A stretch of DNA of 64,000 nt from the sequence record MZ475897.1; one strand, given 5' to 3'. A model generated the notes under the pieces. The model saw nothing but the letters and a program-made list of their open reading frames with translations. It was not told the origin of the DNA and did not search any database. Position 1 is the stretch's first letter; every line of letters begins with the position of its first letter. Shown in pieces: positions 39,407-57,801 of this stretch. Both the position numbers and the translations under genes were made by a program.

Positions 39407-39703
39407 ATGTCTGAACAAACTCAATTGCCTGGCCAAGTCGTTATCGTTTGTGTTATGCAGGAATCTGATTCTTTCATGGGCCAGAAGTTTGATGGCTATG
39501 TGTACTTGCTCAATCCAGAACACAAAGAGATGTTTGAACGTCACCTGCAGGCGCACAAAAGCCGTGAGAACTACTCACGCATTATCAGCCACGCTAATCA
39601 CTATATAACTAGCACGGGCTTCGATGCGCTTCATGCTGCTATACGCAAAGATGCAAACAGACCCTGGCTGTGGTCAGATACTGATTACACGATAACTGCA
39701 TAA
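39407..39703 (+). CDS. hypothetical protein
   Basis: GAGGTG SD. Confidence 0.75.
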   Translation: MSEQTQLPGQVVIVCVMQESDSFMGQKFDGYVYLLNPEHKEMFERHLQAHKSRENYSRIISHANHYITSTGFDALHAAIRKDANRPWLWSDTDYTITA

Positions 39704-39706
39704 ATC

Positions 39707-39750
39707 TGGACAAAATAGAGGTAGCTAGAAAAAGCTGCCTCTGATATACT
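39707..39750 (+). promoter_or_regulatory. TGGAC-class promoter
   Basis: TGGACAAAAT-AGAGGTAGCT-AGAAAA-AGCTGCCTCT-GATATACT; 38 nt spacing. Confidence 0.82.
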
Positions 39751-40455: not shown

Positions 40456-40902
40456 ATGACCTTCAATGAAGTCCCAACGAAAGCTCAACTCAGTCTTCTG
40501 GCTATGGCTGTTATGGCGTGCGCCGAGATTATGTGTCGCGGCCAAGAGACTGCCGCACAAAAACAAGCTGTCGACCTGCTGTGTGCTCGATTCGGTTTGA
40601 CTCTGGAAGATCTCACCCAGTTGACTAAGCTGCCTCCTGAAATCGATCAGTATGTGCAGAAAGTTATGGACGAAGGCGCTAAGCGACCTGTATCTGACTT
40701 TGAGGCCAAAGCAGAGCCTGTGCCTGAATACAGTCAAGACGACCTTGATCTAATTCGCGTAGAATACGAGCCAATCGATACGTCTGTCCTGCGCCAGGGC
40801 GCTGTGAATGATGGTGTTATCACAGTGCAGCAAGCAGCCGCTTATGATCGTACTCAGATACTGACTGCTATTCTTGAGCACCGTCTGCGCTCAGAAGCAT
40901 AA
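40456..40902 (+). CDS. hypothetical protein
   Basis: GAGGA SD. Confidence 0.8.
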   Translation: MTFNEVPTKAQLSLLAMAVMACAEIMCRGQETAAQKQAVDLLCARFGLTLEDLTQLTKLPPEIDQYVQKVMDEGAKRPVSDFEAKAEPVPEYSQDDLDLIRVEYEPIDTSVLRQGAVNDGVITVQQAAAYDRTQILTAILEHRLRSEA

Positions 40903-40905
40903 ATC

Positions 40906-40949
40906 TGGACAAAATCGTGGTTGTAGCAAAAACCGTCCTATGTTATAAT
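40906..40949 (+). promoter_or_regulatory. TGGAC-class promoter
   Basis: TGGACAAAAT; TTGTAG 17 nt before TATAAT; extended -10 TG. Confidence 0.85.
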
Positions 40950-40992: not shown

Positions 40993-41084
40993 ACGCGTTT
41001 TTGCTTGACTGTAAGGTAGCGGTATCTTACAGTCCTTTTTCAAGTGGCTTCGAAGTTTGAGGCTTCTTGCGAAAGGTCAAACGT
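40993..41084 (+). ncRNA. candidate structured RNA element, copy 1 (5' leader)
   Basis: GACTGTAAG/CTTACAGTC stem, then CTTTTTCAAG/CTTGCGAAAG stem, closed by CGTTT/AAACG; paralogue at 42050-42135. Confidence 0.55.
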
Positions 41085-41158: not shown

Positions 41159-41980
41159 ATGCCAGAAGCACGCAAACCTCGCCCAGCTGATCGTTTCGCT
41201 AAAGCCCGTGCAGAGAAAAACTCACCGGAGCGTCAAGATGCGGCAGCCCAGCGCACGTATAAAGACACTCCGCCTAAATCTGTTCAGGTGAAACTTGATG
41301 CTGTGGCAGCTTCTAAGAAGAAAGTTTCTCGCGGCCCCAAGGCCTCTCGTCCACGTCAGTCGCCTGCTGTTGACGCAGCACCAAAGCCTCGCATTCGTGA
41401 TGAGGAACGTGTGTTCAATCTTGTACACATGATTCTCTCTGCGTGGAAAGCCGATGCAGAAAATGAGGCCACAAGTGTGGGAATAATCAAAGTGTCTCGT
41501 CGTAAGATTGAGGGCGCGTTACGCGATCTCAAGAATACGCGCTTCACTAAAATCCCAGGCTTAATCAATGACGTGCTTGTCTACAATGAACTGGTAGCTG
41601 AGTTCGGTCAGTGGGTGTACGTCGAGCACGACAGTCCTGATTGGATTTTTGTGCGCCTGCCTGAAAACAGCACGCCTGTGATTCGCGCTGACATTAGCTA
41701 CGCCAAGACGGGTGAAACTTCCACGTCTGTTTCGACTTCTAGTGAAGTTCTGCTGGAAGATCTCAACGAAGACGAAGAAGATGAGATCCCCGAGAATGTC
41801 GAGTACGACGATGCGGACGAGACGGACGAAGACGAAGAGGAGCCGTACGATTACAGCGCTTGGTCTCTGCGTGACCTGCAAGATTATGCAAAGCGCTATG
41901 ACTTCCTGCAGCCCGACACTGAGGGGTTCGATGATCGCGAGAAGTTGATAGCAGCCATCGAGCTTGGGGAACAGCACTAA
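41159..41980 (+). CDS. hypothetical protein: basic N-terminus, acidic tract, C-terminal HeH-like module
   Basis: AAGGA SD; YSAWSLRDLQDYAKRYDF...DDREKLIAAI. Confidence 0.85.
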   Translation: MPEARKPRPADRFAKARAEKNSPERQDAAAQRTYKDTPPKSVQVKLDAVAASKKKVSRGPKASRPRQSPAVDAAPKPRIRDEERVFNLVHMILSAWKADAENEATSVGIIKVSRRKIEGALRDLKNTRFTKIPGLINDVLVYNELVAEFGQWVYVEHDSPDWIFVRLPENSTPVIRADISYAKTGETSTSVSTSSEVLLEDLNEDEEDEIPENVEYDDADETDEDEEEPYDYSAWSLRDLQDYAKRYDFLQPDTEGFDDREKLIAAIELGEQH

Positions 41981-41989
41981 GCACAAATA

Positions 41990-42034
41990 TGGACAAAATA
42001 GTGGTAGCATCTAAAGCATGACCTGTGCTACACT
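41990..42034 (+). promoter_or_regulatory. TGGAC-class promoter
   Basis: TGGACAAAAT 39 nt upstream of TACACT with extended -10 TG. Confidence 0.78.
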
Positions 42035-42049
42035 ATAGATCGAATGCCT

Positions 42050-42135
42050 TGTAGTTTTTTGACTGTGAGTTACTTTCCGGCTCACAGTCCTTTTTAAAGT
42101 GCTCTCCCAAGAACGCTTTAAAAAGCACAGACTGC
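42050..42135 (+). ncRNA. candidate small ncRNA, copy 2
   Basis: GACTGTGAG/CTCACAGTC and CTTTTTAAAGTG/CGCTTTAAAAAG stems, closed by GTAGTT/GACTGC; lies between two promoters with no long ORF. Confidence 0.6.
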
Positions 42136-42162
42136 CTGCGCTTTTGATAGACAGCATAAATC

Positions 42163-42206
42163 TGGACAAAATCATGGTTGTATCAGAATGCTGCCTGTCA
42201 TACACT
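42163..42206 (+). promoter_or_regulatory. TGGAC-class promoter
   Basis: TGGACAAAAT 38 nt upstream of TACACT; TTGTAT at -35. Confidence 0.78.
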
Positions 42207-42267
42207 TTAATGAGTCGAGCAATAGTGCTCGCAACAAACTAAATCCCAATACTGAGGAGTATTACAC

Positions 42268-43860
42268 ATGGCACGTTTCGAAACTAACACTAACCTGGTT
42301 GGCAAAACTATCGTCCTGCTGAACGGCACCAAAGCGAAGATTGAAGACGCTATCGTTTCTGGCTACAAAGTGAAAGGCCAGACCAAGCGCATCGCAACCC
42401 GTGACGTTATCAAAGAGGGTGCGCACTTTAAAGAAATCGAGCGCACGCCGCTGAGCCAGCTGGAAGATACTGGCGAAGGTTATGTGAAGTTGAAAGAAGC
42501 CAAAGCCGCTTCTAAGAAAGCGCCTGCGAAAGACGCGAAAGCTACTGGCAAAAAAGCTGCGGCAAAAGACAAGCCTGCTAAGACCAGCAAAAAAGCTGCG
42601 GCCAAAGATAAGCCAGCGAAAGAGACTGAGCCGAAAGTTCGCCGTAAGTCTGCGAAAGAGCAGGGCAACGATTATCAGGAACTCGCGCAGGCTATCATCA
42701 AAGGCGGTCGCCGTGCAGCGCCAGTTGAAATTGACAGCGTAGACGAAGCGCTGACCGATGCTATCGCTAAGCGTCTGACCGCTGTTGTCGAATCGTCTGA
42801 GATTGCGAAACTCGCCGCTGATAACAAAACGCCTATCGCTAACGCACTGACCGTAACTTACGGCGCTGAGTTTGCGACTGATGCAAACGTTGTGCAGATT
42901 ACGCTGAACCTGCAATACGCTAAGCCGACTGTCGTTGAGTCTGCCGCTCCTACTCTGGAGAATGCAGAAGCAATCGCAATGCGTGCTGCTAAAATGGCCG
43001 CGCCTAAAGTGAGCGCTAAACTCAAGAAGGCAGTGCGTGAAGCGTTCGACATTGAAACAGACCTCGAGCTGGGCACTGTGATTATGTCTGGCGATGATCA
43101 ATTCGCTTACTACGGCGAAAGCGCGAAGCACGCTGGCAAAGCGCTGCTGTATGTTGTCGAAACTGACAAGTTCAAATCTGTCCTGGCCTCTACTCTGACC
43201 GACTACGAACTGCCTGCTGATGAAGAAGCTGAGGCAGAAGAGGAGGAAGAAGAAGAAGAAGAGGAAGAAGAAGAAGCCGCTGATGACTTCGACGACGAAG
43301 AGGAAGAAGATGCGGATGCCCCAGATGACCTTGACGACACCGATGGCGACGACGACGAATTCCAGTACGTTGCTGTAGGCGATGAGCACTTTGCTCTGGT
43401 CAACAAAAAGGTCACAGCCAAGTATCACGATGCGCTGGCTGAGCAATTCGGCGTTAGCACCGAAGCGCTGGTCCCAGGCTTAGTGTTGACCAACGGCGAG
43501 ATCACTTTCGCTTATCTGGGCAACGATAGCAAAGGCGGCCTGCTCGTTATCGACCTCGACGACGATGCGGACGAAGACGACAACGTTCTGGTCTACCCGA
43601 AAGCCGACGTTAAATCTCTGACCGACTTCTCTCCTGTGCTGGGTGATGCAGATGAAGAAGACGCAGACGATGCAGAAGAGACCGACGAAGAAGACGAAGA
43701 TCAGGACGACGACTTCGAATTTGACGATGCGCCGACTGCCGACCTCGAAGATCTGTCCGACGATGAGCTGCGTGACCGCGCTGTTGAGATGGGCCTGACC
43801 ACTGTACGCAAAGCTGACAAAATGAACGCCAAGCAACTGCGTGCGCTGCTGTCTGAATAA
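42268..43860 (+). CDS. multidomain K/A-rich + D/E-rich protein with C-terminal HeH-like module
   Basis: GAGGAG SD; KKAAAKDKPAK x2; poly-E/D linkers; LEDLSDDELRDRAVEMGLTTVRKADKMNAKQLRALL. Confidence 0.9.
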   Translation: MARFETNTNLVGKTIVLLNGTKAKIEDAIVSGYKVKGQTKRIATRDVIKEGAHFKEIERTPLSQLEDTGEGYVKLKEAKAASKKAPAKDAKATGKKAAAKDKPAKTSKKAAAKDKPAKETEPKVRRKSAKEQGNDYQELAQAIIKGGRRAAPVEIDSVDEALTDAIAKRLTAVVESSEIAKLAADNKTPIANALTVTYGAEFATDANVVQITLNLQYAKPTVVESAAPTLENAEAIAMRAAKMAAPKVSAKLKKAVREAFDIETDLELGTVIMSGDDQFAYYGESAKHAGKALLYVVETDKFKSVLASTLTDYELPADEEAEAEEEEEEEEEEEEEAADDFDDEEEEDADAPDDLDDTDGDDDEFQYVAVGDEHFALVNKKVTAKYHDALAEQFGVSTEALVPGLVLTNGEITFAYLGNDSKGGLLVIDLDDDADEDDNVLVYPKADVKSLTDFSPVLGDADEEDADDAEETDEEDEDQDDDFEFDDAPTADLEDLSDDELRDRAVEMGLTTVRKADKMNAKQLRALLSE

Positions 43861-43881
43861 GTAACCTGTAGTTCTGAATAC

Positions 43882-43903
43882 ATGCGGCTCGAAAGGGCCG
43901 CAT
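43882..43903 (+). terminator. hairpin
   Basis: ATGCGGCTC-GAAA-GGGCCGCAT. Confidence 0.6.
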
Positions 43904-43935
43904 ACTGACAACAAAGTTGATTGAGGAATCACATT

Positions 43936-45198
43936 ATGTCAAACGCAAATAAAACTCTGCTTAACGCTCGTGTACGTCTGTCCACTGGCACAACTACTTT
44001 CATCAACAAGATTAACGCTAACGGCTACGGCATCGATGCTAAGGGCCCACAGATTTCTGTGAAGCGTCTTGTTATCGCAGGCAAAATGCTCAAAGAGCTG
44101 GCTGAGCCGCTGCCGCAAGGTGAATACGTTGTGCTGAACGGCGTCACTGTGAAACTGAACAAGCGCCAGCAACGTGAGCTTGCAGAGAAAACGCTCGACA
44201 CTAAAGCATTGCTGCCTGATTTAAGCAAGCTGACCTACGTTGACCCGCAGACAGGCAAAGTCACTGATGCAAAAGTGAAGCAGCCGAAAGCTGGCGCGAA
44301 AGCAAGTCTGAAAGCAACGCGTGAGCACAACAAAGAGCCGAAGCGTAGTCGCAAACAGCACAAAGCTGAAACGAACGATCTCAAAGACAGTCTGGACATT
44401 ATCGACGAACGCAAATCACCGAAAGCGTCTCTGATTGAACGTCTGGATGCAGCAATCGCCGAAGCGAAAACGAAAGCACGCCGTAAGCTGTTAGCCGAAA
44501 CGTTCGACATGGACTGGGCTGATATTAAAAAGCATGGCGGTGCAGGTATCGTTAAGCAGCATGGCCGCAAGAACGCCCAGAAGTTTATTGATCGTCAGAC
44601 AGTGCAGGTCGATAGCACAACGTTCATCAAACAAATGCCAGCGCCGCTCAAGCGTCTTATTCAGGACACTGAGTTGCGTCTCAATCAAAAGCAGATTGAG
44701 CAAGTGCTTGGTGCGCTGGGACTTGATACGCAATTCTACGCAGTCGCCGTACAAGAGCTGCTGGGCAAACTCAAACTGTCCATCGGCGGTCGCGTGATCG
44801 AAGGCGAAGTTGTTCGAAAGGAGAACACGCCGAAGCCAAAAAGGTTCGTACACGCTGAGGCGCGATACGCAGACAAGAAAGAAGCGAAACGCCGCGTAAG
44901 CAAAATGAAATACGCGCTGCTGATTCCGCCTACGAAAGGTCTGCCTGCGTTACGCATTCATCAGGCAGAGGCAAAGCAGTCACTCGCCGTTCTGCTGCAC
45001 CTGAAGCCTGGGAACATCAAGCGTGGTCTGCTCGCGTATGACAACAAAGGCCGTGAGTATATGTATGTCGCTTGCGATATGACGGGCCCTGTGTTCATCG
45101 ATAAAGATAGCAACGAACTGGCGTTCACGTATGCCAATCTGATCGATAACTTCAAACTCAAAGCGCAGCCTGTGTCTGAACTGGACGTGGCCGTATGA
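43936..45198 (+). CDS. basic protein, partial paralogue of 42268..43860
   Basis: GAGGA SD; shares an N-terminal domain and a G-x6-9-Y-x2-D-x2-G beta domain. Confidence 0.85.
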   Translation: MSNANKTLLNARVRLSTGTTTFINKINANGYGIDAKGPQISVKRLVIAGKMLKELAEPLPQGEYVVLNGVTVKLNKRQQRELAEKTLDTKALLPDLSKLTYVDPQTGKVTDAKVKQPKAGAKASLKATREHNKEPKRSRKQHKAETNDLKDSLDIIDERKSPKASLIERLDAAIAEAKTKARRKLLAETFDMDWADIKKHGGAGIVKQHGRKNAQKFIDRQTVQVDSTTFIKQMPAPLKRLIQDTELRLNQKQIEQVLGALGLDTQFYAVAVQELLGKLKLSIGGRVIEGEVVRKENTPKPKRFVHAEARYADKKEAKRRVSKMKYALLIPPTKGLPALRIHQAEAKQSLAVLLHLKPGNIKRGLLAYDNKGREYMYVACDMTGPVFIDKDSNELAFTYANLIDNFKLKAQPVSELDVAV

Positions 45199-45581
45199 GA
45201 ACTGAAATCATCGTAGCGGGAGTTCTCTCTCAACTTTACACGCGGCTGATTACGGCCGCTATAATGAAAGCGCATGTGTATTACTCAGACCTTGCGCCAG
45301 TGGTGTTCGGTGTGCAGCTTACCAAAGTCGGTAAGTCGCAGTATCAAGCGCTGTGGGATTTAGTAGCGCTGACGATGCAGATGGATCACGCACACGGCCG
45401 ACCGCCTGTTGCTGCTCTGTATGTGTCTCGCGCTAATGCATCAAAACGACCGCCGCAAGCATTCTTCGCTGAATACGAGCGGCTAACTGGTAAGCGACTC
45501 AATGACGACGACTGGGAAGAGTTAGTCGATGAAGTATGGGCAGCTTACTCTCCACCAGAACTGTGTCAGGAGCCGACATGA
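45195..45581 (+). CDS. hypothetical protein, possible winged-helix
   Basis: VYYSDLA...GRPPVAALYVS pattern seen in small wHTH-like phage proteins. Confidence 0.65.
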   Translation: MRTEIIVAGVLSQLYTRLITAAIMKAHVYYSDLAPVVFGVQLTKVGKSQYQALWDLVALTMQMDHAHGRPPVAALYVSRANASKRPPQAFFAEYERLTGKRLNDDDWEELVDEVWAAYSPPELCQEPT

Positions 45582-46036
45582 AGAAGTTGAAAGCCGTAAA
45601 GGTTAAAATTAGCCGCGGTGGTTATAAGCCTTCTTCTAAGGAAGAGGCAAAGAAGCTGGTGGCAGAGTTTCTGCTCGGCACCATCGGTATCAGCCCAACG
45701 CAAGTCAGTCAACAACTGCTGTTGAATATCACGAACTACAACTATTTGACCTCTGTTGCGTATTCTGGACGTTCTACAGATTACAGCCAAGCGGCAGCGC
45801 ACAAAACTGTAAAAGAACTAAATGAATTTTGTCGAAAGCATAAAATTCAACTGGGCTTGCTAATTATGCCCCACACGTCGGCGTCTGAATATGATGGTGA
45901 CGTAATTGTTGCAATCCCGTGGGAGCATGTTAAGAACAATCCGCAAATCCAGTCTGCCGTTAATTCTCTGTTTGAATCGGTTGAAGCAGACGGCTACCCA
46001 CAGTATGTGACTGATGCTAAAACAGTAGAGGGATAA
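45578..46036 (+). CDS. hypothetical protein
   Basis: AGGAG SD, ATGA overlap. Confidence 0.8.
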   Translation: MKKLKAVKVKISRGGYKPSSKEEAKKLVAEFLLGTIGISPTQVSQQLLLNITNYNYLTSVAYSGRSTDYSQAAAHKTVKELNEFCRKHKIQLGLLIMPHTSASEYDGDVIVAIPWEHVKNNPQIQSAVNSLFESVEADGYPQYVTDAKTVEG

Positions 46037-46037
46037 G

Positions 46038-47318
46038 ATGTTCTACGACTATGTATTCAACTTCGACGAGCGCCAGACGCTACTGTCGTTAGCGGAATCC
46101 AAGTATCTTCTTAAACGGGACATTCCCGAGTATCTTAAAAAGTCCAAACACGCAATTGAGATTCGTCACACTGTGACCAATCGTGGACGCGAGCGCCGCT
46201 CAGGAACAATAACAACTCCTATCGTGCCGCGTATTCACACTCGTGATGTTATGCGCTTGCTTGATGATATTCGTGACAACGCGACTTACAGCTCCTGTCA
46301 AAGTCTCGCTGAACTGTTTGAATTGGGCTTGGGCGTTCCGCGCCAGAAAGATATTGCTACTTACCTTCATGCTTATTCGCGTGAGCACGATAAGAAAGGT
46401 ATCGGTATCAAGTATATCCGCAAGCTGGTGGTTGATTATCATCGTAAGCACCGTCGTAGTATGGCGGGCAGTCGCTGGTTAATGCCTGCTGCTTACACGG
46501 CCAATCTGCTGAACATGCAGAACTTCATTCATCTGAAAGAAGACGGCTACAAGGGTAAAGTCAAAACGCCAGACGGCATCCCTGTAGTCTTGATTTACCA
46601 GAGCACTGAATACGCGACTGGCGAGTTTACTTTGTGTGACGCATTCATGATTAGTCCGATGGGATATCCAATGCCGTTCGCACAGATTGCGCTGCGTCCC
46701 GAGTTCAAGGCTGTGCCTAAAACGTTTTGCTCCCAAGCTCTGCGCGGCAAAGGCATGTACTCAATGGTTCTCGGTATGATTTACTGGGAGAAAGGTGATT
46801 CAGTCGAATTGACCCGCGAAGTCATGGAGATTGATGATAACCAGTATCTCACGTTGCTTGATGATGAACGTTACGCTGACCGTCGCTCTGATGAATATTC
46901 AGCGATGCTGGTCAAGCGTGAAGAGTTCCGTCGTAATCGTGACAAGTGGCAGTCAGTGATTGATAAGTACGGCCAAACAGTTCGAACTCTCAAGCCTGAG
47001 ATTAGCGCTCGTCTTGATCGTGCTCGTCAGTTCTTCTACGACCGTGCCGAGTTCCTGAAAGAGTTCGAGTCTCAGGAGAAGCGTGAGAACACCCGCGCAT
47101 CAAAACGTTTTGCTGTAGCGTCTGCGATGTTTGCAGCGGTTGACTGTGGGACAATTGCTGATCGTCAGACCTACCTTGCAGTAAGCACAAAGATTGATAA
47201 AGTGCATGACATTCTCGGTAAGTGGGGATTCAACACTGTAAAATCTGTTAATGCTAGTTTGAAGAAGTCTCTTTTAACCTATGACGAATCAGGCGTATCT
47301 CGCGTCTGGTCACTATAA
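46038..47318 (+). CDS. hypothetical protein with one Sel1-like repeat
   Basis: SLAELFELGLGVPRQKDIATYLHAYS. Confidence 0.8.
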   Translation: MFYDYVFNFDERQTLLSLAESKYLLKRDIPEYLKKSKHAIEIRHTVTNRGRERRSGTITTPIVPRIHTRDVMRLLDDIRDNATYSSCQSLAELFELGLGVPRQKDIATYLHAYSREHDKKGIGIKYIRKLVVDYHRKHRRSMAGSRWLMPAAYTANLLNMQNFIHLKEDGYKGKVKTPDGIPVVLIYQSTEYATGEFTLCDAFMISPMGYPMPFAQIALRPEFKAVPKTFCSQALRGKGMYSMVLGMIYWEKGDSVELTREVMEIDDNQYLTLLDDERYADRRSDEYSAMLVKREEFRRNRDKWQSVIDKYGQTVRTLKPEISARLDRARQFFYDRAEFLKEFESQEKRENTRASKRFAVASAMFAAVDCGTIADRQTYLAVSTKIDKVHDILGKWGFNTVKSVNASLKKSLLTYDESGVSRVWSL

Positions 47319-47339
47319 CCCTTATCTGAGGAGATAAAC

Positions 47340-50300
47340 ATGTCCGAGAACAATCAAAGCGGAGCTACTCGCTTCGGCACAGAAGTGCAGGCCGGCATCG
47401 CAGAAGCGCAACGCCGTGCTAACTCTGCTGAGAGTGGCAAGCTGAACAAATGCACGATCATCGTGCTGACTTCGATTGACGCCAACCAGCGTTACTCTTA
47501 TCTGTCCGCAGACGAACAACTGCGCGAAGAACTGGTGCGTGGTAAAGTAATCAATCGTCTTCCTGATCTGTTAGAGCGTGCTGGTGGTAATACCGCTGCT
47601 GACAATAACAGCGCGTTCCACATCCTGCACCCGAACAACGGTGTGCCTACCTCGATCGATGCTCGCATCAAAGTGGGCGAAGGCAATGCGGTCATTCTGT
47701 CATATACTGTAAACAAAGCAGTGACAGAGATGCACGGTAGCTTATCGCTTGCTCTGTTTGCATCTGGCGCCGAAGACTTAAATGATCTGGCCGCTGATTT
47801 CGGTATTCACGCAATTGCGATTGTTGAAGAATCGAAAGCCGCTGAGTTCATCAAAGGACTTGAAGCTCAGGTGGAAGCGTTGAATATTGTAAATCTCACT
47901 AGCATTGATGATTCTAACGATTCGTTAGACCTGCCAGTGATTGACTTCGCTGCATTAGCGGGCAATCCTACAACAGTGCTTACGGGCGCTGTGCGTACCT
48001 TCATCATGCAATCAATCAGCGGCGAAGTCTTCGCTGCAATCCCTAATAACGGAGAACTGAACGTGAAAAACGATAACGTGGCTCAGCCTGCTGACCTGGA
48101 AGAAGACTTCGACAACAATGATGAGATTGTTGATCAGAACGGCGGTGAAGGCGAAGTTACTGGCGAAGAGCTGCTGGGCTACAAAGCAGAAAATCTTTCG
48201 CTCGACCAAATGCGTAGTGCGCTTGAAGCGATCAACTACGACCTGTCTGAAATGACGGAAGAAGCAATCCGTGAAGCGTTCGAAACTGAACAGAACCTTT
48301 ACCTGGGTGGCGGCGATGACGAATCTTCCGAAGAAGAGGAAGATGAAGACGCCGCTGATGTTGACAGCGACGAAGAAGAAGAGGAAGAAGACGAGGAGTT
48401 CGATGCTCCTGCGTATCTGGCTCAAGCGCTCGCTGCTGAAAACTTTAGCCGTAGCGATCTGAAACTGCTGGTCAAGTCTCAAGACCTGAAAGTGATGAAG
48501 AACGACACTCCTGAAACTCTGGTGCAGAAGCTGCTGGACCTGGTGCAGGACGCATCGTCCGATGAAGTGTTCGAACTGATCACTGTGTTCGTTGAACTGC
48601 TGGACGAGCACGGCGTTGAATGTGACGCGCTGCGTGCTACCATCGCTGAGGACGAAAGCGATGAAGACGAAGAAGAGGACGGCGAAGACGAAGACGCCGA
48701 TGAAGATGGCGACGACGAAGAAGAGGAAGATGAAGAGGAGTCTGATGAAGACGAATCTGAAACCGAATCTGATGACGAAACCGAAACGCTGTCTGTGGCT
48801 GACGTTACCGATCCTCTCGATTACTTCCGCTTCAACGGTGGTGACCTGACTGCCGAGCAGCGTATTGCTGCTGTCGAATCGATGGGTACAAGCACTGTTG
48901 GTCTGAACATTGTTCAGGTCATGAAAGCGTTCAACGAAATCCGCTCACAGTCTAACCTGATCGATATTGCCGCTGATGAAGCCGACTCTGCGCTGTACGA
49001 TATGCTGACTGCTCTGCCGTACGCAACGCTGCTGAGCTTCGCTCAAGAGATTGAGCTGGAAGTTGATGGCGAAGAGTCTGCCGAAGATCTCGTCACTCTG
49101 CTGATGGACGAATCTACTGCCGACAGCGATACGCTGAAAGCGCTGGCGTATGTGTTCGAAACCTACGGTGGCCTGGGTGTTGAAGCAGATGATATCCTGC
49201 TGATGGACTGGCATGAAGCGCTGGCGCTGGTTATTCCTGTGTATGCATCGTCAGACGAAGTTGAGTCCGATGCAGAAGACGAAGACGAAGACGTTATCGC
49301 CGATGAAGATTCGTCTAACGCTAACCTGAAGTTCCTGAAATCTGTTGACGTCAACAACCCTGTCGGCCCGATGCTCGAAGTTGATATGGATCGCACTCTG
49401 GTTATCAACTACACCTTCACTGACGGTAACACTTACCGCGATGTGCAAGATGAGCTGGCTGATATCGGTGGCGTTAACTACCGCTTCCCGTTCAATCTGG
49501 GCAAAGCAGGTAAAGCAAACAAGAGCAGTGCGCCTGGTAGCCTGATTGCTCCTGCTGAACATCTGATCGCAATGTTAGACCGCGCCGGTACTACTCGCTT
49601 CTTAGCTGACCCGAACACCTTCGATGTTGGTGTGTGGGCAGAATCTCTGGAGCGTATGCTGAACGCAGAAATCGCTAACAACCTGTATGCTGGTCGCATT
49701 GAAGACGGCGCTGACCCGCAGCAAGCTGGCATCGTAGTCGGTGACTTCATCGATGAAGACGAGCAAGCAGAAGTTGCTGACCTCGGTCTGCTGGATGAAG
49801 ATGAGCTGGAAGCGTACACTGGTGACCATCTGCCGATTGCAAGCCTGTACAATGCGCAAGCCCGCGTTCGTCCAGTCAACGTCGATAGCTCTTACGTTGC
49901 ACTGAGCACTGTAGTGCTGAACGTTGCAGTCCCTGGCTTCTGGTGTGACTCTGATGTTGGCCGTCTGGTACAAGCGTGTGTTAATCGCGTAATCAGCCTG
50001 GCAGAAAGCGTTGAAGGTATAAAAGTGTATGCAGGCTTCACTCTGGAATCTGCTGCGCTGCTGAACAACGGTCGCCTGTACGAAGTTGTTGGTGCGCTGC
50101 GTGAGATGGACGGTGTGCAGTCTTACTCCGCCGCTGACGCCGCTAACTTCTCAGAAGCGGAAGACATTATCGAAGTGGCGTCTTCTATCGATGATCGTGA
50201 CCTGCCGTTCACTGTACTGGCAAGCGGTCTGTCTGGCGCAACGTTTGAAAACGGCGGTGACCTGACCGTGCTGGTTCCGTGCTCTGTCTTCGACGAAGAG

Positions 50301-50345
50301 GAAGATGAGTCCGAAGAGGACGAGTCAGAAGAAGACGAAGAGTAA
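47340..50345 (+). CDS. 1001-aa highly acidic protein with several HeH-like modules
   Basis: GAGGAG SD; multiple poly-D/E tracts; ENLSLDQMRSAL, ENFSRSDLKLLVKSQDL...TPETLVQKLL, ALPYATLLSFAQEIEL...SAEDLVTLL. Confidence 0.9.
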   Translation: MSENNQSGATRFGTEVQAGIAEAQRRANSAESGKLNKCTIIVLTSIDANQRYSYLSADEQLREELVRGKVINRLPDLLERAGGNTAADNNSAFHILHPNNGVPTSIDARIKVGEGNAVILSYTVNKAVTEMHGSLSLALFASGAEDLNDLAADFGIHAIAIVEESKAAEFIKGLEAQVEALNIVNLTSIDDSNDSLDLPVIDFAALAGNPTTVLTGAVRTFIMQSISGEVFAAIPNNGELNVKNDNVAQPADLEEDFDNNDEIVDQNGGEGEVTGEELLGYKAENLSLDQMRSALEAINYDLSEMTEEAIREAFETEQNLYLGGGDDESSEEEEDEDAADVDSDEEEEEEDEEFDAPAYLAQALAAENFSRSDLKLLVKSQDLKVMKNDTPETLVQKLLDLVQDASSDEVFELITVFVELLDEHGVECDALRATIAEDESDEDEEEDGEDEDADEDGDDEEEEDEEESDEDESETESDDETETLSVADVTDPLDYFRFNGGDLTAEQRIAAVESMGTSTVGLNIVQVMKAFNEIRSQSNLIDIAADEADSALYDMLTALPYATLLSFAQEIELEVDGEESAEDLVTLLMDESTADSDTLKALAYVFETYGGLGVEADDILLMDWHEALALVIPVYASSDEVESDAEDEDEDVIADEDSSNANLKFLKSVDVNNPVGPMLEVDMDRTLVINYTFTDGNTYRDVQDELADIGGVNYRFPFNLGKAGKANKSSAPGSLIAPAEHLIAMLDRAGTTRFLADPNTFDVGVWAESLERMLNAEIANNLYAGRIEDGADPQQAGIVVGDFIDEDEQAEVADLGLLDEDELEAYTGDHLPIASLYNAQARVRPVNVDSSYVALSTVVLNVAVPGFWCDSDVGRLVQACVNRVISLAESVEGIKVYAGFTLESAALLNNGRLYEVVGALREMDGVQSYSAADAANFSEAEDIIEVASSIDDRDLPFTVLASGLSGATFENGGDLTVLVPCSVFDEEEDESEEDESEEDEE

Positions 50346-50351
50346 TTGACA

Positions 50352-50371
50352 TGCGGTCCTTCGGGGCCGCA
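50352..50371 (+). terminator. hairpin
   Basis: TGCGGTCC-TTCG-GGGCCGCA. Confidence 0.65.
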
Positions 50372-50396
50372 ATCTTTCTCAACAGGAACTGTCTAA

Positions 50397-51218
50397 ATGT
50401 CAGAACAAGTTGACCACGCAACTAACATCATTAAGATGGTTAGTGACCGTGATGCAAAGATTAGCGAGCTGTCCGTTACGGCAAACGAGCTGCAAGGTCA
50501 GGTGAATGACTATGCTGCCGAACTCGCCGCATCTGCTGTGCGTGAAACTGCATTGCGTTTGAAGCTACGTTCTCAAGAGCGCCAGACGAATACTGATTTA
50601 GTTCGTCTGGAAACTCGCACGAAAGAGCTGGTGGATATTTCAAACACTCAGATGGCCGAAAGCAACGAGCTTAAAGCACGCGTTGAAGAAATGAACGCTA
50701 AGCTGGCGCAAGTTGACCCGATGCCGTTCGTGTTGCATCTGGTTGCTGTGCAAGCTGCATCTGTGTTCTCGTACATGGTGCAGTCGTTTGCTCATGCTCA
50801 TGTTAACCAGCGTACCAACGATACCACACGCACACTCAGTGCTCTGATGGTAGGCGAAACAGCGCGGCGTTATCAGTCTTTCGAAAAGACCATCGCTCGT
50901 TACTGCAACTCGATTGGCGCTGAACGTCCGAAAGCAAATGATGTGCGTAACGCTTTCCCTGACTTCATGCGTAATGAAGCTGATTTATTCTGTAAAGACC
51001 CGAAGTACAGTCACGATTGCATGGCATTAGCTGCTATGCTTAATCTGCCTCGTACATCGTGGATGTATCGAAAGTCTCTGGACGCCGTAAACCACTTCGC
51101 GTGGATTGCAGCTTTCGAAGGCAGTCCTCAAGAGTTTGAGTCAGAATCAGATTACAACGAATTATACGTTAACTCGCTTATCGATATTGCAAGCGCGTTA
51201 ATCGGGCAAAACTTTTAA
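50397..51218 (+). CDS. coiled-coil hypothetical protein
   Basis: Heptad-rich N-terminal ~100 aa. Confidence 0.85.
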   Translation: MSEQVDHATNIIKMVSDRDAKISELSVTANELQGQVNDYAAELAASAVRETALRLKLRSQERQTNTDLVRLETRTKELVDISNTQMAESNELKARVEEMNAKLAQVDPMPFVLHLVAVQAASVFSYMVQSFAHAHVNQRTNDTTRTLSALMVGETARRYQSFEKTIARYCNSIGAERPKANDVRNAFPDFMRNEADLFCKDPKYSHDCMALAAMLNLPRTSWMYRKSLDAVNHFAWIAAFEGSPQEFESESDYNELYVNSLIDIASALIGQNF

Positions 51219-51243
51219 TCTGTAAAACTTCCCTGTGATTTAT

Positions 51244-51263
51244 TCTGTAAACACTAATTGAAG
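51244..51263 (+). promoter_or_regulatory. TCTGTAAACAYTAATTGAAG element, copy 1
   Basis: 19/20 identical to 51958-51977; both precede highly codon-biased genes. Confidence 0.6.
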
Positions 51264-51313
51264 TTCGCAACGGGCAAAAGCCCAAATCGAAAAATTAACG
51301 GAGTTCCACTACA

Positions 51314-51883
51314 ATGGCAAAAGCTACTAAGTCAACTAACCTGGTTCCTACCCTGGTTTCTCGCATCGCTAAAAAGTCTGGCTCTATCGGTACTTCGAAA
51401 GCAAAAGCAACTGACCTGCCGCATGACATTCTGATCGAATCTCAGCACGTTGTCGAAATCATCGGTTACATCACTGACCGTTCTGCGAACCACGTTACTC
51501 TGCGTCACAAAAAAGGCCACGGTTCTTCTTCTCAGATCGTTTCAACCTTCGGCCCAGGTCAACTGCTGACCGTTCTGGGTGAAGCCGGTTCACACGGTTC
51601 TGTGCGTGCGCTGATTACTGCTCCGGTCTGCGAACTGAAAGGCTTCACCATTAAGTATGACGGCGATACCATCATCGCTACTTCTATCGAAACTGGCGAA
51701 GTGATTCACGTTAACACCCAGCTGGCCGGTCACACCGTTCGCGCTACTGTGAACGAAACTGCTGCCGCTAAGAAATACGGCACGCCTGCTCCAGGCAAAG
51801 GCAAGAAAGATGCTAAGCCTGCTAAAGCAGACAAAGCAGCGAAAGGCGGTAAGAAAAAGAAAGGTAGCGACGAAGACTTTTAA
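51314..51883 (+). CDS. protein with K/A-rich C-terminal tail
   Basis: GGAG SD; ends KPAKADKAAKGGKKKKGSDEDF. Confidence 0.9.
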   Translation: MAKATKSTNLVPTLVSRIAKKSGSIGTSKAKATDLPHDILIESQHVVEIIGYITDRSANHVTLRHKKGHGSSSQIVSTFGPGQLLTVLGEAGSHGSVRALITAPVCELKGFTIKYDGDTIIATSIETGEVIHVNTQLAGHTVRATVNETAAAKKYGTPAPGKGKKDAKPAKADKAAKGGKKKKGSDEDF

Positions 51884-51916
51884 TCGCTGATCTGAAAATC
51901 TGTAAAAACTGATTAT

Positions 51917-51946
51917 GCAGAGCAACAAAAAATAAAGTTGCTCTGC
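51917..51946 (+). terminator. perfect 10-bp hairpin
   Basis: GCAGAGCAAC-AAAAAATAAA-GTTGCTCTGC. Confidence 0.6.
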
Positions 51947-51957
51947 CGTTAAACGAA

Positions 51958-51977
51958 TCTGTAAACATTAATTGAAG
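51958..51977 (+). promoter_or_regulatory. TCTGTAAACAYTAATTGAAG element, copy 2
   Basis: See copy 1. Confidence 0.6.
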
Positions 51978-52013
51978 CAAGTCGCTTCTCATCCCATACA
52001 GGAAATAAAAACC

Positions 52014-52820
52014 ATGGCTAAATCTGCTAAAGTAACCGTAACCGTCGCACAGAAAGTTCTGGCTCAGATGCTGGGTGTTGTTGTAGCGAACGCAAGCGAG
52101 AAAGAACTCGTTGCGATTCTGTCTGACCTGGGCCTGACTGTTGCTGCGAAAGGTAAAGGTGCTAAAGCTGAGAAAGCTGCGAAAGGCGGCAAGAAAGCTA
52201 AAGCCGCTACCGTTGCTCAGATCGTTAAGGCCGTTGAAGAAGAGGAAGCTATCTCCCTCGACGGCGTAAGTGAAGATGACCTGCGTGCTGCGGTCGTCAA
52301 AGCTAAGCTGGCTAAGGCCAACAAAGCTAAAGCGCTGGACGAAGAGGAGTTGACTGAACTCCTGACCGACGCAATGGGTGCCGAGTCTGATGAAGACGAG
52401 GAAGAGGACGAAGAGGACGAAGACGAGGACGAGGACGAGGACGAAGACGAAGACGACTCGGACGACGAAGACGAAGATGAAGACGACGAGGACTCAGATG
52501 ATGAAGATGAGGACGAAGACGACGAAGATTCGGACGACGAAGACGAGGACGAAGATGATGAGGAGGAAGACGAAGACGAGGACGAAGATGAGGACGAAGA
52601 TGAAGATCTCGACCTCGACGGCCTCGACGAAGACGAACTCCGCGCCCTCGTGATCGACAACAAGCTGGCCACTAAGGCCAAAGCTAAAAAGATGGACGAA
52701 GACGAACTTCGTGAACTGTGTGAATCCCACTTCGGCGGCGACGATGAAGACGAAGACGAAGATGAGGACGAAGACGATGAAGACTTCGACGACGAAGACG
52801 AAGACGAAGACGACGAATAA
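52014..52820 (+). CDS. poly-D/E protein with two HeH-like modules
   Basis: AGGA SD; 73-residue tract of 70 D/E + 3 S flanked by two ~40-aa repeats. Confidence 0.9.
   Translation: MAKSAKVTVTVAQKVLAQMLGVVVANASEKELVAILSDLGLTVAAKGKGAKAEKAAKGGKKAKAATVAQIVKAVEEEEAISLDGVSEDDLRAAVVKAKLAKANKAKALDEEELTELLTDAMGAESDEDEEEDEEDEDEDEDEDEDEDDSDDEDEDEDDEDSDDEDEDEDDEDSDDEDEDEDDEEEDEDEDEDEDEDEDLDLDGLDEDELRALVIDNKLATKAKAKKMDEDELRELCESHFGGDDEDEDEDEDEDDEDFDDEDEDEDDE
52389..52607 (+). repeat. poly-Asp/Glu coding tract with SDDEDEDEDDED tandem units
   Basis: Almost entirely GAN codons. Confidence 0.95.
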
Positions 52821-52835
52821 GTCCTGATCTGCCGC

Positions 52836-52870
52836 TGCCCTGCAAGACTAATGAGTGTCTGCGCAGGGCA
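52836..52870 (+). terminator. hairpin
   Basis: TGCCCTGC...GCAGGGCA with inner AGAC/GTCT. Confidence 0.55.
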
Positions 52871-53033
52871 AGAAATATTCGAAAAATAGTTCGAATTATT
52901 TCGCAAAAAGTTTGAAAAATTCCTGTCGTTGTTTATTGCACATAGTAATATTCGACTACAGGAATTAAACCTGAAAAATTTTACTTTTATCCAACGCGAC
53001 GAGTCGCACAAAATAAATTCACGGAGTTATGCC

Positions 53034-53546
53034 ATGACTAAGAAAATCATTTCCGGCCTGAACAAAAACCTGAAAGCTATCGCTAAATCAGAAGCTGCCC
53101 TGGCCAAAACTGTTGCTGCTACTAACAAAGAGATCGAAAACCTGGGTTCACAGCGTGCTGGTATCGAAGCGCAGATCGCTGAACTGTCTGGTGTTGCTGC
53201 TCCTGCCAAAGCTGATAAAAAAGCTAAAGGCGCGAAAGCAGAAAAAGCGGCCAAGCCTGCTAAAGCTGAAAAAGCAGCTAAAGCCGGTAAGAAAGAAAAA
53301 GCTGCTAAAGCTGAAAAGCCAGCCAAAGCTGATAAAAAAGCTAAAGTCGCCAAAGCTGAAAAAGCTGCTAAGCCTGCCAAAGCTGAAAAAGCTGGCAAGA
53401 AAGAAAAAGCTGCTACCAAGCCTGCTAAAGCTGATAAAAAAGCGAAAGGCGCCAAGGCCGACAAAGCTGCTAAAGGCGGTAAAGCTGACAAAGCCGGTAA
53501 GAAAAAGAAAGCGCAGTCTGATGACTTCGAATTCGAAATGGAATAA
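53034..53546 (+). CDS. histone H1/AlgP-like K/A/P-rich protein with N-terminal coiled coil
   Basis: GGAG SD; repeated KPAKAEK/PAKADKK units; ends KKKKAQSDDFEFEME. Confidence 0.85.
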   Translation: MTKKIISGLNKNLKAIAKSEAALAKTVAATNKEIENLGSQRAGIEAQIAELSGVAAPAKADKKAKGAKAEKAAKPAKAEKAAKAGKKEKAAKAEKPAKADKKAKVAKAEKAAKPAKAEKAGKKEKAATKPAKADKKAKGAKADKAAKGGKADKAGKKKKAQSDDFEFEME

Positions 53547-53579
53547 GCAAGCGGTCGCATAGCGCGATAACTTGATCGA

Positions 53580-53608
53580 GAGGGCAGCGCTGACGGGCGT
53601 TTGCCCTC
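53580..53608 (+). terminator. hairpin
   Basis: GAGGGCAGCGC...GCGTTTGCCCTC. Confidence 0.55.
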
Positions 53609-53644
53609 TTGTCGTATCTAACTCATTTTCGAGGCTCTTTAAAA

Positions 53645-54130
53645 ATGTCCAAACAAGAAGTATTCAACCGTCTTGATGACCTTCATGCAAAAGAGCGTGA
53701 GCGTATCAAACAAGCCAAGCAAGGCCCCTCCTATTTCGAACTGACGAACCTGCGTATTGAAGCAGCCGCTCGTCTCGCTCGTGCCCTACAAACTCTCAAA
53801 GCCGCAAACGTTGTTGGTAACGTTGAAGGTGTCTCTCTGCAGGAAGATGCGCTTGAAGTCGCTCAAGCCTACTGGTCTGCTATCTTAGAAGGCTTAACCC
53901 CTGTAGTAGTTGAAGGCTCGCCTATGCGCAAGCTGCTTGATGGCATGCCTGCATGTATCGAAGCGTTCCGTGTTATCGTAATGGAAAGCGCTATGCGTGA
54001 ACATCTAGTCGTTCAATGCAATGCGATTGCAGATGACATTAAGGGTTTCCCGCAACTGACTGGTCATGTTCTGCCTACTATTCAACACACCTGCGAAGAG
54101 GGATGCAACTGTGGCTCAATCACTAAGTGA
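53645..54130 (+). CDS. hypothetical protein
   Basis: GAGG SD. Confidence 0.8.
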   Translation: MSKQEVFNRLDDLHAKERERIKQAKQGPSYFELTNLRIEAAARLARALQTLKAANVVGNVEGVSLQEDALEVAQAYWSAILEGLTPVVVEGSPMRKLLDGMPACIEAFRVIVMESAMREHLVVQCNAIADDIKGFPQLTGHVLPTIQHTCEEGCNCGSITK

Positions 54131-54899
54131 GAAGATTAACCGTTACTTCAATCTGATGGAGGACATCCGTGCTGAGATGTTCCGCGTGATTGATGTATCT
54201 GACCGTTATTTCGGTATCGTTAGTTTCAACACTAACATGCAGGCACTGCAAACCACACTGGTGAGCAAATCCACCCTGATGGAAGTTAAGCTGCTTGAGG
54301 GTATCACTGGTGCGGAGATGATTGCGTTTGGCAATATGGTTCACACTGTAGAGCAATGGGTTGCTGGTGGCATGAAAGGCGCTTTCCCTATCGAGCAGAC
54401 CAAAGACGTGTATGCCAAATATCGCGCTGCTACCTCAGATGAACCACAGGCGCAAAATGAACCGGAGCCTGCTAATACCCCGCAGCCTGCTAATACCCCG
54501 CAGCCTGATGCTGATGAGTTAGACAGCCAGGAACTGGACAATATCAAAGTTCAACTTCTGTCCTTCGATGACTCTGAACTGATCGACCATGCCGCTCAGT
54601 TTAAACTTGGGACGCGTACACGCCTACGCAGAATGTGCCGAGATGATCTGTTGGACATGCTGTTTGACCATCATGGTATCTATGCAGAAAACGATCAGCG
54701 CCGTAATGAAAGTGTCGCAGACTGGTTAGAGCGTATCCCTCTCGATGATGCTCTCCGCGAAGTCGACCGCATAGATGATAGCAGTGTACTTGATCACGTT
54801 GCGGACGCTATGAGCGTTATGTCGGGTGTCAATGACGCTGTGACGCGAGCGCGTATAAAGCAGTCGCTGAAAGAGCTACACACTAAGCCCGCGCAGTAA
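54111..54899 (+). CDS. hypothetical protein with HeH-like module
   Basis: Probable GTG start; LLSFDDSELIDHAAQFKLGTRTRLRRMCRDDLLDMLF. Confidence 0.8.
   Translation: MAQSLSEKINRYFNLMEDIRAEMFRVIDVSDRYFGIVSFNTNMQALQTTLVSKSTLMEVKLLEGITGAEMIAFGNMVHTVEQWVAGGMKGAFPIEQTKDVYAKYRAATSDEPQAQNEPEPANTPQPANTPQPDADELDSQELDNIKVQLLSFDDSELIDHAAQFKLGTRTRLRRMCRDDLLDMLFDHHGIYAENDQRRNESVADWLERIPLDDALREVDRIDDSSVLDHVADAMSVMSGVNDAVTRARIKQSLKELHTKPAQ
54468..54503 (+). repeat. 18-bp perfect tandem repeat x2 (PANTPQ)
   Basis: CCTGCTAATACCCCGCAG twice. Confidence 0.95.
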
Positions 54900-57792: not shown

Positions 57793-57801
57793 GAGGCTGG
57801 C

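Follow-up and report, generated by a model that had tools for sequence, protein, structure and literature searches.

Sequence comparison and structure prediction indicate that a genuine, conserved domain of about 41 residues, the module, is repeated in proteins encoded near the end of the genome of Erwinia phage pEa_SNUABM_21. This Y3/Alexandra-type jumbo phage has the fire-blight bacterium as its host, and all its genes are annotated as 'hypothetical'. The window analysed here is the whole stretch formed by the last 64 kb of the genome. Our best reading, a tentative one, is that DNA-associated phage proteins bear the module on acidic tails, where it may serve as a weak, multivalent anchor or docking unit. 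The domain family has so far gone undescribed, and it is 'unknown' in Pfam, NCBIfam and PHROGs.

Copies of the module

A preliminary description of this DNA had proposed a repeated module with four close copies and several looser ones, across many genes. Its five coordinate pairs are all in frame, with translations that show the pattern it gave, and leave-one-out and profile statistics, a shuffle control and conservation across genera bear out the module as a genuine domain. The four close copies are not of equal standing, however. By sequence, c1, c2 and c3 are certain homologues, while c4 is only a diverged, probable member (Table 1).

Leave-one-out HMMs were built from the module copies, and orthologue profiles were made separately with 18 or 28 sequences; these profiles score c1–c3 at 1e-17 to 1e-25. 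By the 28-sequence profile, A6, c1–c3 are members of the module family (phrog_30618/phrog_33433 C-terminus), the segments at 41852 and 11722 and the 1001-aa protein lying below a match. When the residues of all 88 predicted proteins were shuffled 100 times, nothing reached 11 bits; c1–c3 score 46–66 bits. The length of c1 (40–41 aa) is invariant over six genera, and the module as a whole keeps a fixed, gapless 41 aa across six genera while the acidic linkers that flank it vary in length. An HMM built from the four close copies recovered only its own seeds in a six-frame scan of the window.

Low-complexity composition (helices rich in D, E, K, L and A) might be thought to explain the likeness between copies without homology, and the copies at 41852, at 11722 and in the 1001-aa protein indeed fail every profile test. 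This explanation is nevertheless scarcely credible: it is refuted for c1–c3 and could apply to the looser copies alone, chance or low complexity is ruled out for c1–c4 by the shuffle control, the gapless register and the cross-genus conservation, and an exhaustive search gave a small, specific family, not thousands of matches.

Table 1. Module copies, candidate copies, carriers and neighbouring genes in the window.
Feature	Position	Strand	Evidence
Possible further copy, 406-aa protein (28974-30194), just ahead of acidic tract	29685-29780	+	iE 0.005-0.6; hhalign
Degenerate module copy, 463-aa protein (37548-38939), behind acidic tract	38628-38771	+	orthologue alignment A7; hhalign
Possible further copy, C-terminus of 148-aa protein (40456-40902)	40765-40872	+	iE 0.003-0.06; hhalign
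Helix-loop-helix segment, C-terminus of 273-aa protein (41159-41980), behind acidic tracts	41852-41959	+	orthologue alignment A5
530-aa carrier protein	42268-43860	+	annotated CDS; orthologue alignment A1, six genera; phrog_33433 (unknown function)
Module copy c1 (certain), in 530-aa protein	43741-43857	+	leave-one-out iE 1.7e-3; profile iE 3e-17
1001-aa protein	47340-50345	+	AlphaFold2 with 19 orthologues, pLDDT 70.5
189-aa neighbour, lysine-rich tail	51314-51883	+	charge map
268-aa carrier protein	52014-52820	+	annotated CDS; phrog_30618
Module copy c2 (certain), in 268-aa protein	52257-52379	+	leave-one-out iE 4e-6; profile iE 8e-21
Poly-D/E linker between c2 and c3	52380-52619		GAAGAC-type repeat array (Tandem Repeats Finder)
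Module copy c3 (certain), in 268-aa protein	52605-52739	+	leave-one-out iE 9e-12; profile iE 1.6e-25
170-aa lysine/alanine-rich 'H1-like' neighbour	53034-53546	+	charge map; K/A repeats
Module copy c4 (probable, diverged), in 262-aa protein (54111-54899)	54555-54677	+	iE 0.0009-0.009; hhalign P 5e-5
Topoisomerase II large subunit and second subunit	55040-59463	+	Pfam DNA_gyraseB, Toprim, DNA_topoisoIV; phrog_551

The match of c4 to the module profile in hhalign is gapless over 41 columns (probability 67%), and its iE with A6, in a search of the 88 proteins, is about 1e-2 to 1e-3; the leave-one-out HMM missed it. At its C-terminus the 262-aa protein has a variable extension, missing from the Yoloswag and Yersinia-phage orthologues, and c4 lies within it.

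The looser copies fared unevenly: those at 41852 and in the gene at 37548 stand through their orthologues only, and those in the gene at 47340 and at 11722 fail by profile. Orthologues of the 463-aa protein contain a strong module (iE 2e-15 to 3e-9) whose position maps to the putative degenerate copy; the hhalign probability of that segment, 97%, is partly so by construction. The segment at the end of the 273-aa protein has no direct match to the module profile (hhalign P 0.045 over 15 columns). The Alexandra-type orthologue of this protein has an HMM-significant module in the same C-terminal place (iE 1e-9 to 1e-14 after iteration), of which the segment is the positional counterpart. There is no profile match in the 1001-aa protein, and 11722 failed the profile test and lacks sequence support; both would be fold analogues at most. 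Two candidates missing from the preliminary list, in the 148-aa and 406-aa proteins, align in hhalign over 36 gapless columns (P 0.0016) and 32 columns (P 3e-4), respectively.

To speak of many genes was an overstatement: by sequence, the certain copies number three and the probable ones about three, in five or six genes, all between 37.5 and 54.7 kb of the window. A sequence scan of the remaining 198 kb gave no module copy. Spread of the module over the whole genome is ruled out, the copies being confined to a 17-kb stretch.

Predicted fold and relation to known domains

The sequence of c3 was modelled with AlphaFold2, using related loci taken from IMG/VR. In the model (pLDDT 88.5), with helices at residues 9–18, 24–29 and 32–43, the module is predicted to be an independently folding three-helix domain with a helix-extension-helix shape like that of Rho-N, SAP and HeH. 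Its hydrophobic core is fixed, each of the two long helices is preceded by an acidic cap, and a loop or short helix rich in lysine is conserved.

Outside the clade, the Foldseek neighbours of the module in BFVD are mostly 'Rho termination factor N-terminal domain' proteins (TMq 0.68–0.75, probability 0.84–0.97), with a single 'HeH/LEM domain' phage protein (TMq 0.68); because the domain is so short, the E-values of these neighbours, 0.7–4, are not individually significant. Rho_N (PF07498) and the viral 'Rho_N domain-containing' proteins resemble the module over some 40–45 residues and share its pattern of a short helix, a helix, a G/K-L turn with extension, and a long helix. By contrast, the module is acidic, its conserved K-rich loop is about two residues longer, and it stands in tandem on poly-D/E linkers where Rho_N precedes an OB fold. 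Compared by hhalign with 71 distinct gammaproteobacterial Rho N-termini, a low-diversity set, A6 aligns in register over 27 columns (P 0.0036), at a probability of 9%.

The SAP domain (PF02037) is a helix-extended loop-helix with the pattern L..L...EL...A...GL, found beside long acidic regions of chromatin-associated proteins; SAF-A/hnRNP U and DEK are eukaryotic chromatin proteins that bear it together with acidic regions. Neither sequence nor Foldseek comparison gave a significant match of the module to SAP, which is basic and whose loop is shorter and holds an invariant Gly. HeH/LEM-like domains (PF12949, PF03020) belong to the same fold class, with precedents for DNA binding (HeH) and protein binding (LEM-BAF), but they are unrelated in sequence and differ in loop length and charge.

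No Pfam family is on record, faint matches included, for any called gene at 37.3–55 kb of the window, carriers among them, nor for nine relatives of the 268-aa protein. With the module profile as query, a search of the complete set of PDB sequences gave nothing relevant: at E<=10 there was not one SAP, LEM or Rho chain. Foldseek of the module against PDB gave nothing significant (best E 2.3); the highest query-normalised TM-score there, 0.70, belongs to 1zbh_A, a chain that presumably contains a SAP domain, and it is a lead only, since the aligned region is not reported. None of these tests, whether by Pfam, PDB sequence or profile, places the module inside the Rho_N, HeH/LEM or SAP families. 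The helix-extension-helix resemblance proposed earlier holds for the predicted fold, with Rho_N and HeH/LEM proteins among its BFVD neighbours, and not for membership by Pfam or PDB sequence. More widely, PDB sequences, Foldseek against PDB, Pfam records and NCBIfam gave no significant match to characterised proteins, and ten cluster proteins searched against NCBIfam returned noise only. The PHROG families of the cluster proteins are clade-specific and have no assigned function. In the literature on Y3-type phages, on helix-extension-helix domains in phages and on acidic or histone-like jumbo-phage proteins, we found no mention of these genes.

Carriers, acidic tracts and neighbouring genes

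From N to C, the 530-aa protein consists of a conserved small domain, a lysine-rich AKKA block (aa 83–130), two folded regions, acidic tracts (aa 318–351 and 462–484) and c1. The 268-aa protein (net charge about -100), which also matches the C-terminus of phrog_33433 (E 1.6e-7), begins with a helical segment, a short lysine-rich linker and c2; a 78-aa poly-D/E linker, c3 and an invariant acidic tail with one Phe follow. The linker between c2 and c3 varies from 58 to 78 aa across orthologues, and Tandem Repeats Finder detects repeats of period 6, 12 and 30 at 52392–52606. Such GAAGAC repeats encode the length-variable acidic linkers that flank the modules; a module is either inserted within such a linker or set at its end. 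In the 1001-aa protein (net charge -185), four disordered acidic tracts separate helical islands, and the disorder predicted in its model coincides with these tracts. The islands are modelled by AlphaFold2 as four helix-(9–10 aa loop)-helix units (aa 288–323, 371–401, 505–539 and 561–589); Foldseek of this model against PDB gave no fold match.

The claim that nearly all copies sit beside poly-acidic stretches is correct for c1–c3, the 463-aa copy, the segment at 41852 and the 1001-aa islands, but not for c4. In the charge map an acidic tract also accompanies the candidate of the 406-aa protein (aa 281–304), and none accompanies that of the 148-aa protein. Among metagenomic relatives, 35 of 67 modules have an acidic tract no more than 20 aa away; for windows placed at random in these proteins the share is 33%.

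The tracts reach 80 aa and give carriers net charges of -100 to -185. They could themselves be the functional part, as DNA mimics or decoys for host nucleoid proteins or DNA-targeting defences, with the modules as spacers or solubility tags, the more so as proteins with acidic tracts and no module exist elsewhere in the genome. We regard this as unlikely: the module, with its fixed length and conserved surface lysines, is under more constraint than the linkers, and it is kept in very different carriers.

The module genes form part of a + strand block of small genes adjoining the topoisomerase. Carriers lie upstream of both topoisomerase II subunits (large subunit 55040–57067, second subunit 57802–59463, with three small genes in between). 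The proximity of topoisomerase II and of H1-like basic proteins, noted earlier, is confirmed by Pfam, phrog_551 and the charge map. The 170-aa protein, of net charge +27, is encoded next to the 268-aa protein and ends in a conserved acidic-aromatic motif, which is also seen just upstream of c1. Its likeness to characterised H1-like and AlgP-like proteins is compositional only, with no PDB sequence match, and PDB searches with the 530-aa profile and the 189-aa and 170-aa proteins gave only compositional matches to acidic proteins. The 189-aa and 268-aa genes share an upstream motif.

Jumbo phages package many internal proteins, and the module genes are all clade-specific, with function unassigned. 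One might imagine that the carriers are packaged together with the DNA, as internal virion proteins or as proteins to be ejected, the module helping them to enter the capsid or to leave it. This is very unlikely, as the module genes belong to the small-gene block near the topoisomerase, away from the long - strand block that holds most of the largest genes of the genome.

Rarity, gain and loss

Among 1.84 billion representative proteins, the module profile retrieved 39 at E<=1e-3, about five of them repeat-protein false positives, which leaves about 34 clusters of carriers. By this sequence search the family is rare and phage-specific. At least two modules are present in 20 of 38 related proteins. 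Module number and presence differ between related phages: P0001 has three modules, P0006 has an extra one inside its acidic tract, the Y3 orthologue of the 463-aa protein is without its module, and two genera lack the extension that holds c4. These comparisons show that, as the family evolves, modules are gained and lost within acidic linkers that repeats encode.

In SSB-like proteins from metagenomes, the acidic C-terminal tail bears one to five modules. In the P0005 family, 5 of 11 members match phrog_1192, 'single strand DNA binding protein' (best E 1.2e-11), and the N-terminus of P0027 matches phrog_7778, an SSB (E 4e-4). A gp32-like identity of P0005 obtained no confirmation from PDB or Pfam, so that phrog_1192 is its sole support. 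The SSB link comes from PHROG names and metagenomic proteins and not from pEa_SNUABM_21 itself, whose carriers in the window have no recognisable SSB domain.

Possible role

The carriers are probably DNA-associated polyampholytes. This we infer from the lysine-rich blocks in several of them, from their H1-like and topoisomerase II neighbours, and from the module arrays on SSB-like tails elsewhere. In the anchoring or docking role that we favour, the lysine-rich face of the module would contact nucleic acid or a common protein partner. The acidic linkers would be flexible tails, repelling DNA and neutralising charge, and might bind either the lysine-rich proteins encoded nearby or the basic block of the carrier itself; such binding would tune the loading of lysine-rich proteins onto phage DNA during replication. 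Positions 18–27 of the module are 35–67% K/R (124 distinct copies), but the mean net charge, -3.6, makes the module acidic overall, and this speaks against its binding DNA directly. Such a charge is unusual for a DNA-binding domain of the SAP type.

The module might instead serve protein docking alone, as LEM does with BAF or as the tips of SSB tails do. Its partner would then be a single hub protein of phage or host, for instance topoisomerase II or part of the replisome, with no nucleic-acid contact. Its negative charge and its presence on SSB-like acidic tails fit this possibility. In T4 gp32, T7 gp2.5 and E. coli SSB, all of them DNA-binding proteins, the acidic tail serves to bind other proteins; it too is disordered and in some cases has an aromatic residue close to its tip, yet it is a short linear motif with no folded domain. 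The acidic-aromatic motif common to the H1-like protein and the region just upstream of c1 also hints at a common docking system. On the other hand, the named fold relatives, Rho-N, SAP and HeH, are mostly associated with nucleic acids, and we consider docking of this pure kind somewhat unlikely.

As the preliminary description proposed, modules, disordered linkers and H1-like proteins might also form a multivalent network that, by phase separation with the phage DNA, gives rise to a nucleoid or to a condensate for replication. Adjacent genes of opposite, extreme charge (-100 and -185 against +27), the frequent presence of two or more modules and the linker disorder of the 1001-aa model would agree with this. 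The evidence is compositional only, however, and the copies are confined to 17 kb; we think such a condensate quite unlikely. A wider reading, which we find quite improbable as well, is that of a chromatin-like set in a non-nucleus-forming jumbo phage: hyper-acidic proteins with the HeH-type anchor would pair with H1-like polylysine proteins, as prothymosin-alpha does with histone H1, in a charge-driven, multivalent assembly organising or shielding the replicating DNA, and the anchor would have been recruited onto SSB tails in other phages. In the literature on Y3-type jumbo phages, we found no description of the group as nucleus-forming.

A domain family that was unannotated now has a name and boundaries. 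If the module is indeed an anchor to DNA or to a hub, it would offer a tractable handle on DNA organisation in jumbo phages that have no protein nucleus, and on the way in which folded docking units come to be added to disordered tails of DNA-binding proteins. The adjacent -100 and +27 proteins, finally, make a compact natural pair for studies of polyelectrolyte complexes in bacteria.

The module and its carriers

Erwinia phage pEa_SNUABM_21 (accession MZ475897.1), whose final 64 kb are identical to the window (adding 201102 to a window position gives the record position), is a 265-kb jumbo phage of a group that includes vB_EamM_Alexandra, Y3, Yoloswag and the Dickeya phages AD1 and JA, with PaBG and Lu11 as more distant members. 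All genes of the record are annotated 'hypothetical protein'. Its cluster encodes, in order, proteins of 530, 420, 128, 152, 426, 1001, 273, 189, 268, 170, 161 and 262 residues, then topoisomerase II, an order kept in Alexandravirus, Sasquatchvirus, Yoloswagvirus, Salmondvirus and one Yersinia phage. Pfam on record matches both topoisomerase II subunits and none of the module-carrying cluster proteins. The latter share a folded, conserved and rare domain, set on disordered acidic tails of variable length.

Four close copies (c1 to c4) had been put forward in the preliminary description, and every coordinate given there is in frame. An HMM built from the four copies matches those four seeds only in a six-frame translation of the window. 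When each copy is sought with the other three, c1 (iE 1.7e-3), c2 (4e-6) and c3 (9e-12) come back and c4 is missed. Orthologue modules from six genera align without gaps, and their profile finds c1-c3 at 1e-17 to 1e-25. Run against 88 predicted proteins, the module profile gives c4 an iE of 0.0009-0.009, none of 100 composition-preserving shuffles scoring as high as 11 bits; the c4 segment alone aligns by hhalign over 41 gapless columns (P 5e-5). We treat c4, on its sequence, as a diverged member. As an independent check, the 268-aa protein matches, at E 1.6e-7, the C-terminal 80 positions of the PHROG derived from the 530-aa family.

The module is 41 residues long in all six genera (40 in one copy), while the neighbouring acidic linkers, encoded by GAAGAC-type repeat arrays, vary (58-78, 23-56 and 15-45 residues). 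An additional module lies within the first acidic tract of one distant 530-aa orthologue, three modules occur in one 268-aa relative, and the c4 extension, which two genera lack, is doubled in Y3: module and linker behave as one unit subject to gain, loss and duplication. Long Ser- or Phe/Leu-rich antisense ORFs opposite the acidic tracts were rejected as genes, being artefacts of the GAAGAC repeats.

Features of the module carriers and their surroundings (window coordinates unless marked)
Feature	Position	Strand	Remark
c1	43741-43857		530-aa protein
c2	52257-52379		268-aa protein
c3	52605-52739		268-aa protein
c4	54555-54677		262-aa protein
Degenerate module, 463-aa protein	38628-38771	+	orthologue alignment
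Possible member	40765-40872	+	P 0.0016
Possible member, just ahead of another acidic tract	29685-29780	+	P 3e-4
GCATAAATCTGGACAAAAT (19 nt)	39698-39716, 40897-40915, 42154-42172	+	~100 nt ahead of genes 39804, 41159, 42268
AATCTGTAAAA and TCTGTAAACA[CT]TAATTGAAG	51217-51227, 51897-51907, also 51244, 51958	+	both upstream of 189-aa and 268-aa genes
ATCTGTAAA	2458, 23889, 59466	+	further occurrences
Terminator-like hairpins, GACTGTnAG...CTnACAGTC then CTTTTT	41007-41034, 42061-42089	+	near-identical pair, ahead of 273-aa and 530-aa genes
GC-rich hairpin	50352-50371	+	after 1001-aa gene
[DE][DE]F[DE]F[DE]	53520-53543		C-terminus of 170-aa H1-like protein
DDDF[DE]FDD	43690-43715		directly before c1
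EDFDDEDEDEDDE	52770-52817		268-aa tail
Similar N-termini (~60 residues)	42268-42440, 43936-44110		530-aa and 420-aa proteins
Antisense ORFs (rejected)	52217-53011, 42262-43446	-	
712-aa and 653-aa proteins	record 108942-111077, 118344-120302	-	very long acidic tracts, no module

Looser copies

Further copies had been proposed, with uneven outcomes. In the 463-aa protein the module is strong in several orthologues, directly after an acidic tract (iE 2e-15 in one relative locus, L012, and 3e-9 in Alexandra); the window's own version is degenerate, and Y3 has lost it. The C-terminal segment of Alexandra-type 273-aa orthologues is drawn into the family once the search is iterated (iE 1e-9 to 1e-14), although the window segment at the same place (41852-41959) does not match the module profile. 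The AlphaFold2 model of the 1001-aa protein (pLDDT 70.5, from 19 orthologues) has four units of helix, 9-10-residue loop and helix, within helical islands separated by four disordered acidic tracts; the helix-loop-helix units noted in the preliminary description do appear in this prediction, yet, with no profile relation to the module, common family membership is not demonstrable. The copy at 11722 finds no support in the profile test. Two possible members absent from the earlier list are tabulated. The genome outside the window holds no further copy of the module; it does encode acidic-tract proteins lacking it, two of them (712 and 653 aa) within the genome's long minus-strand block.

A known fold class, an apparently undescribed family

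Modelled by AlphaFold2 from 28 aligned copies (pLDDT 88.5), the module has helices at 9-18, 24-29 and 32-43. The resemblance to SAP, LEM and Rho-N domains first suggested holds for this predicted helix-extension-helix fold and for its viral neighbours, not for membership of those families. Among predicted viral structures the clade's own proteins come first, then named neighbours, most of them 'Rho termination factor N-terminal domain' proteins (TMq 0.68-0.75, probability 0.84-0.97) encoded by phages and giant viruses, with one 'HeH/LEM domain' protein. The PDB fold search returned nothing significant (best E 2.3); its highest query-normalised TM-score, 0.70, belongs to 1zbh_A, a chain that contains a SAP domain; this is a lead only, as the output does not say which region was aligned. 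Searching all PDB sequences with the module profile gave no SAP, LEM or Rho chain, and Pfam on record has no match for the carriers or their relatives. Against a profile made from the N-termini of 71 distinct Rho proteins of gammaproteobacteria the module aligns over 27 columns in the expected register (P 0.0036, probability 9%). The modelled fold is thus of the Rho-N/SAP/HeH class, known and common in viruses, whereas the phage family, which on sequence cannot be filed under any of these, has no counterpart in Pfam or NCBIfam, belongs to no PHROG with a name and left no trace in the literature searched. Not only the family itself but also its acidity, the tandem arrangement on poly-D/E linkers and the presence on SSB-like tails appear to be undescribed.

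Distribution

Searched exhaustively with HMMER, 1.84 billion representative proteins gave 39 matches at E<=1e-3, all unnamed metagenomic or phage proteins, about five being unrelated repeat proteins. At least two modules occur in 20 of 38 related proteins, and four or five in one (P0004); most follow one layout, in which a basic stretch leads into a module and an acidic linker joins this to a further module. The metagenomic P0005 bears three strong copies in its acidic C-terminal region, where its family consensus has a module-like element, and 5 of the 11 family members match phrog_1192, 'single strand DNA binding protein' (best E 1.2e-11). P0027, with two modules, matches another SSB PHROG at its N-terminus (E 4e-4). 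Because neither PDB nor Pfam confirms SSB identity for these relatives, the link is supporting, not decisive. The metagenomic P0020 (285 aa) has three module-like repeats, each after CGPKKGENRWTK, and no acidic linkers; by its sequence it is a different architecture.

Signals around the carrier genes

Some 20 nt past GCATAAATCTGGACAAAAT lies a sigma-70-like TTGTAG/TTGTAT, a 17-nt spacer and TATAAT/TACACT; the motif may be a common promoter or regulator site for a gene set including two module carriers. The pattern AATCTGKAMAA occurs five times, against 0.14 expected. The hairpins suggest separate transcription units. The acidic-aromatic C-terminus of the 170-aa protein is present in six of six genera, and the 268-aa tail is near-invariant among six; with the similar motif before c1, these are candidates for a common short docking motif, recalling SSB tail tips. 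The 530-aa and 420-aa proteins may share a second small domain, their N-termini (BLASTP 26% identity, E 0.002) being followed by lysine-rich stretches.

Possible role

Across 124 distinct copies the hydrophobic core is fixed, positions 1-9 and 29-32, preceding the two long helices, are acidic, positions 18-27 are lysine-rich, and mean net charge is -3.6. This negative charge, with the precedent of SSB tails as an analogy, speaks for a pure protein-docking role, which we consider rather unlikely even so. Composition is compatible with a DNA mimic or decoy and with the condensate first proposed; we hold both improbable, to about the same degree, and neither has specific support. That the carriers act inside the virion seems the least probable of these readings. 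Carrier genes adjoin topoisomerase II and strongly basic proteins (net +27), and many carriers have lysine-rich blocks of their own. Our tentative preference, with docking as its closest rival, is that the module may be a weak multivalent anchor on the acidic tails of DNA-associated proteins: its lysine-rich face would contact nucleic acid or a common partner, and the tails would take up and buffer the basic proteins encoded nearby, or else the basic blocks within the carriers themselves.
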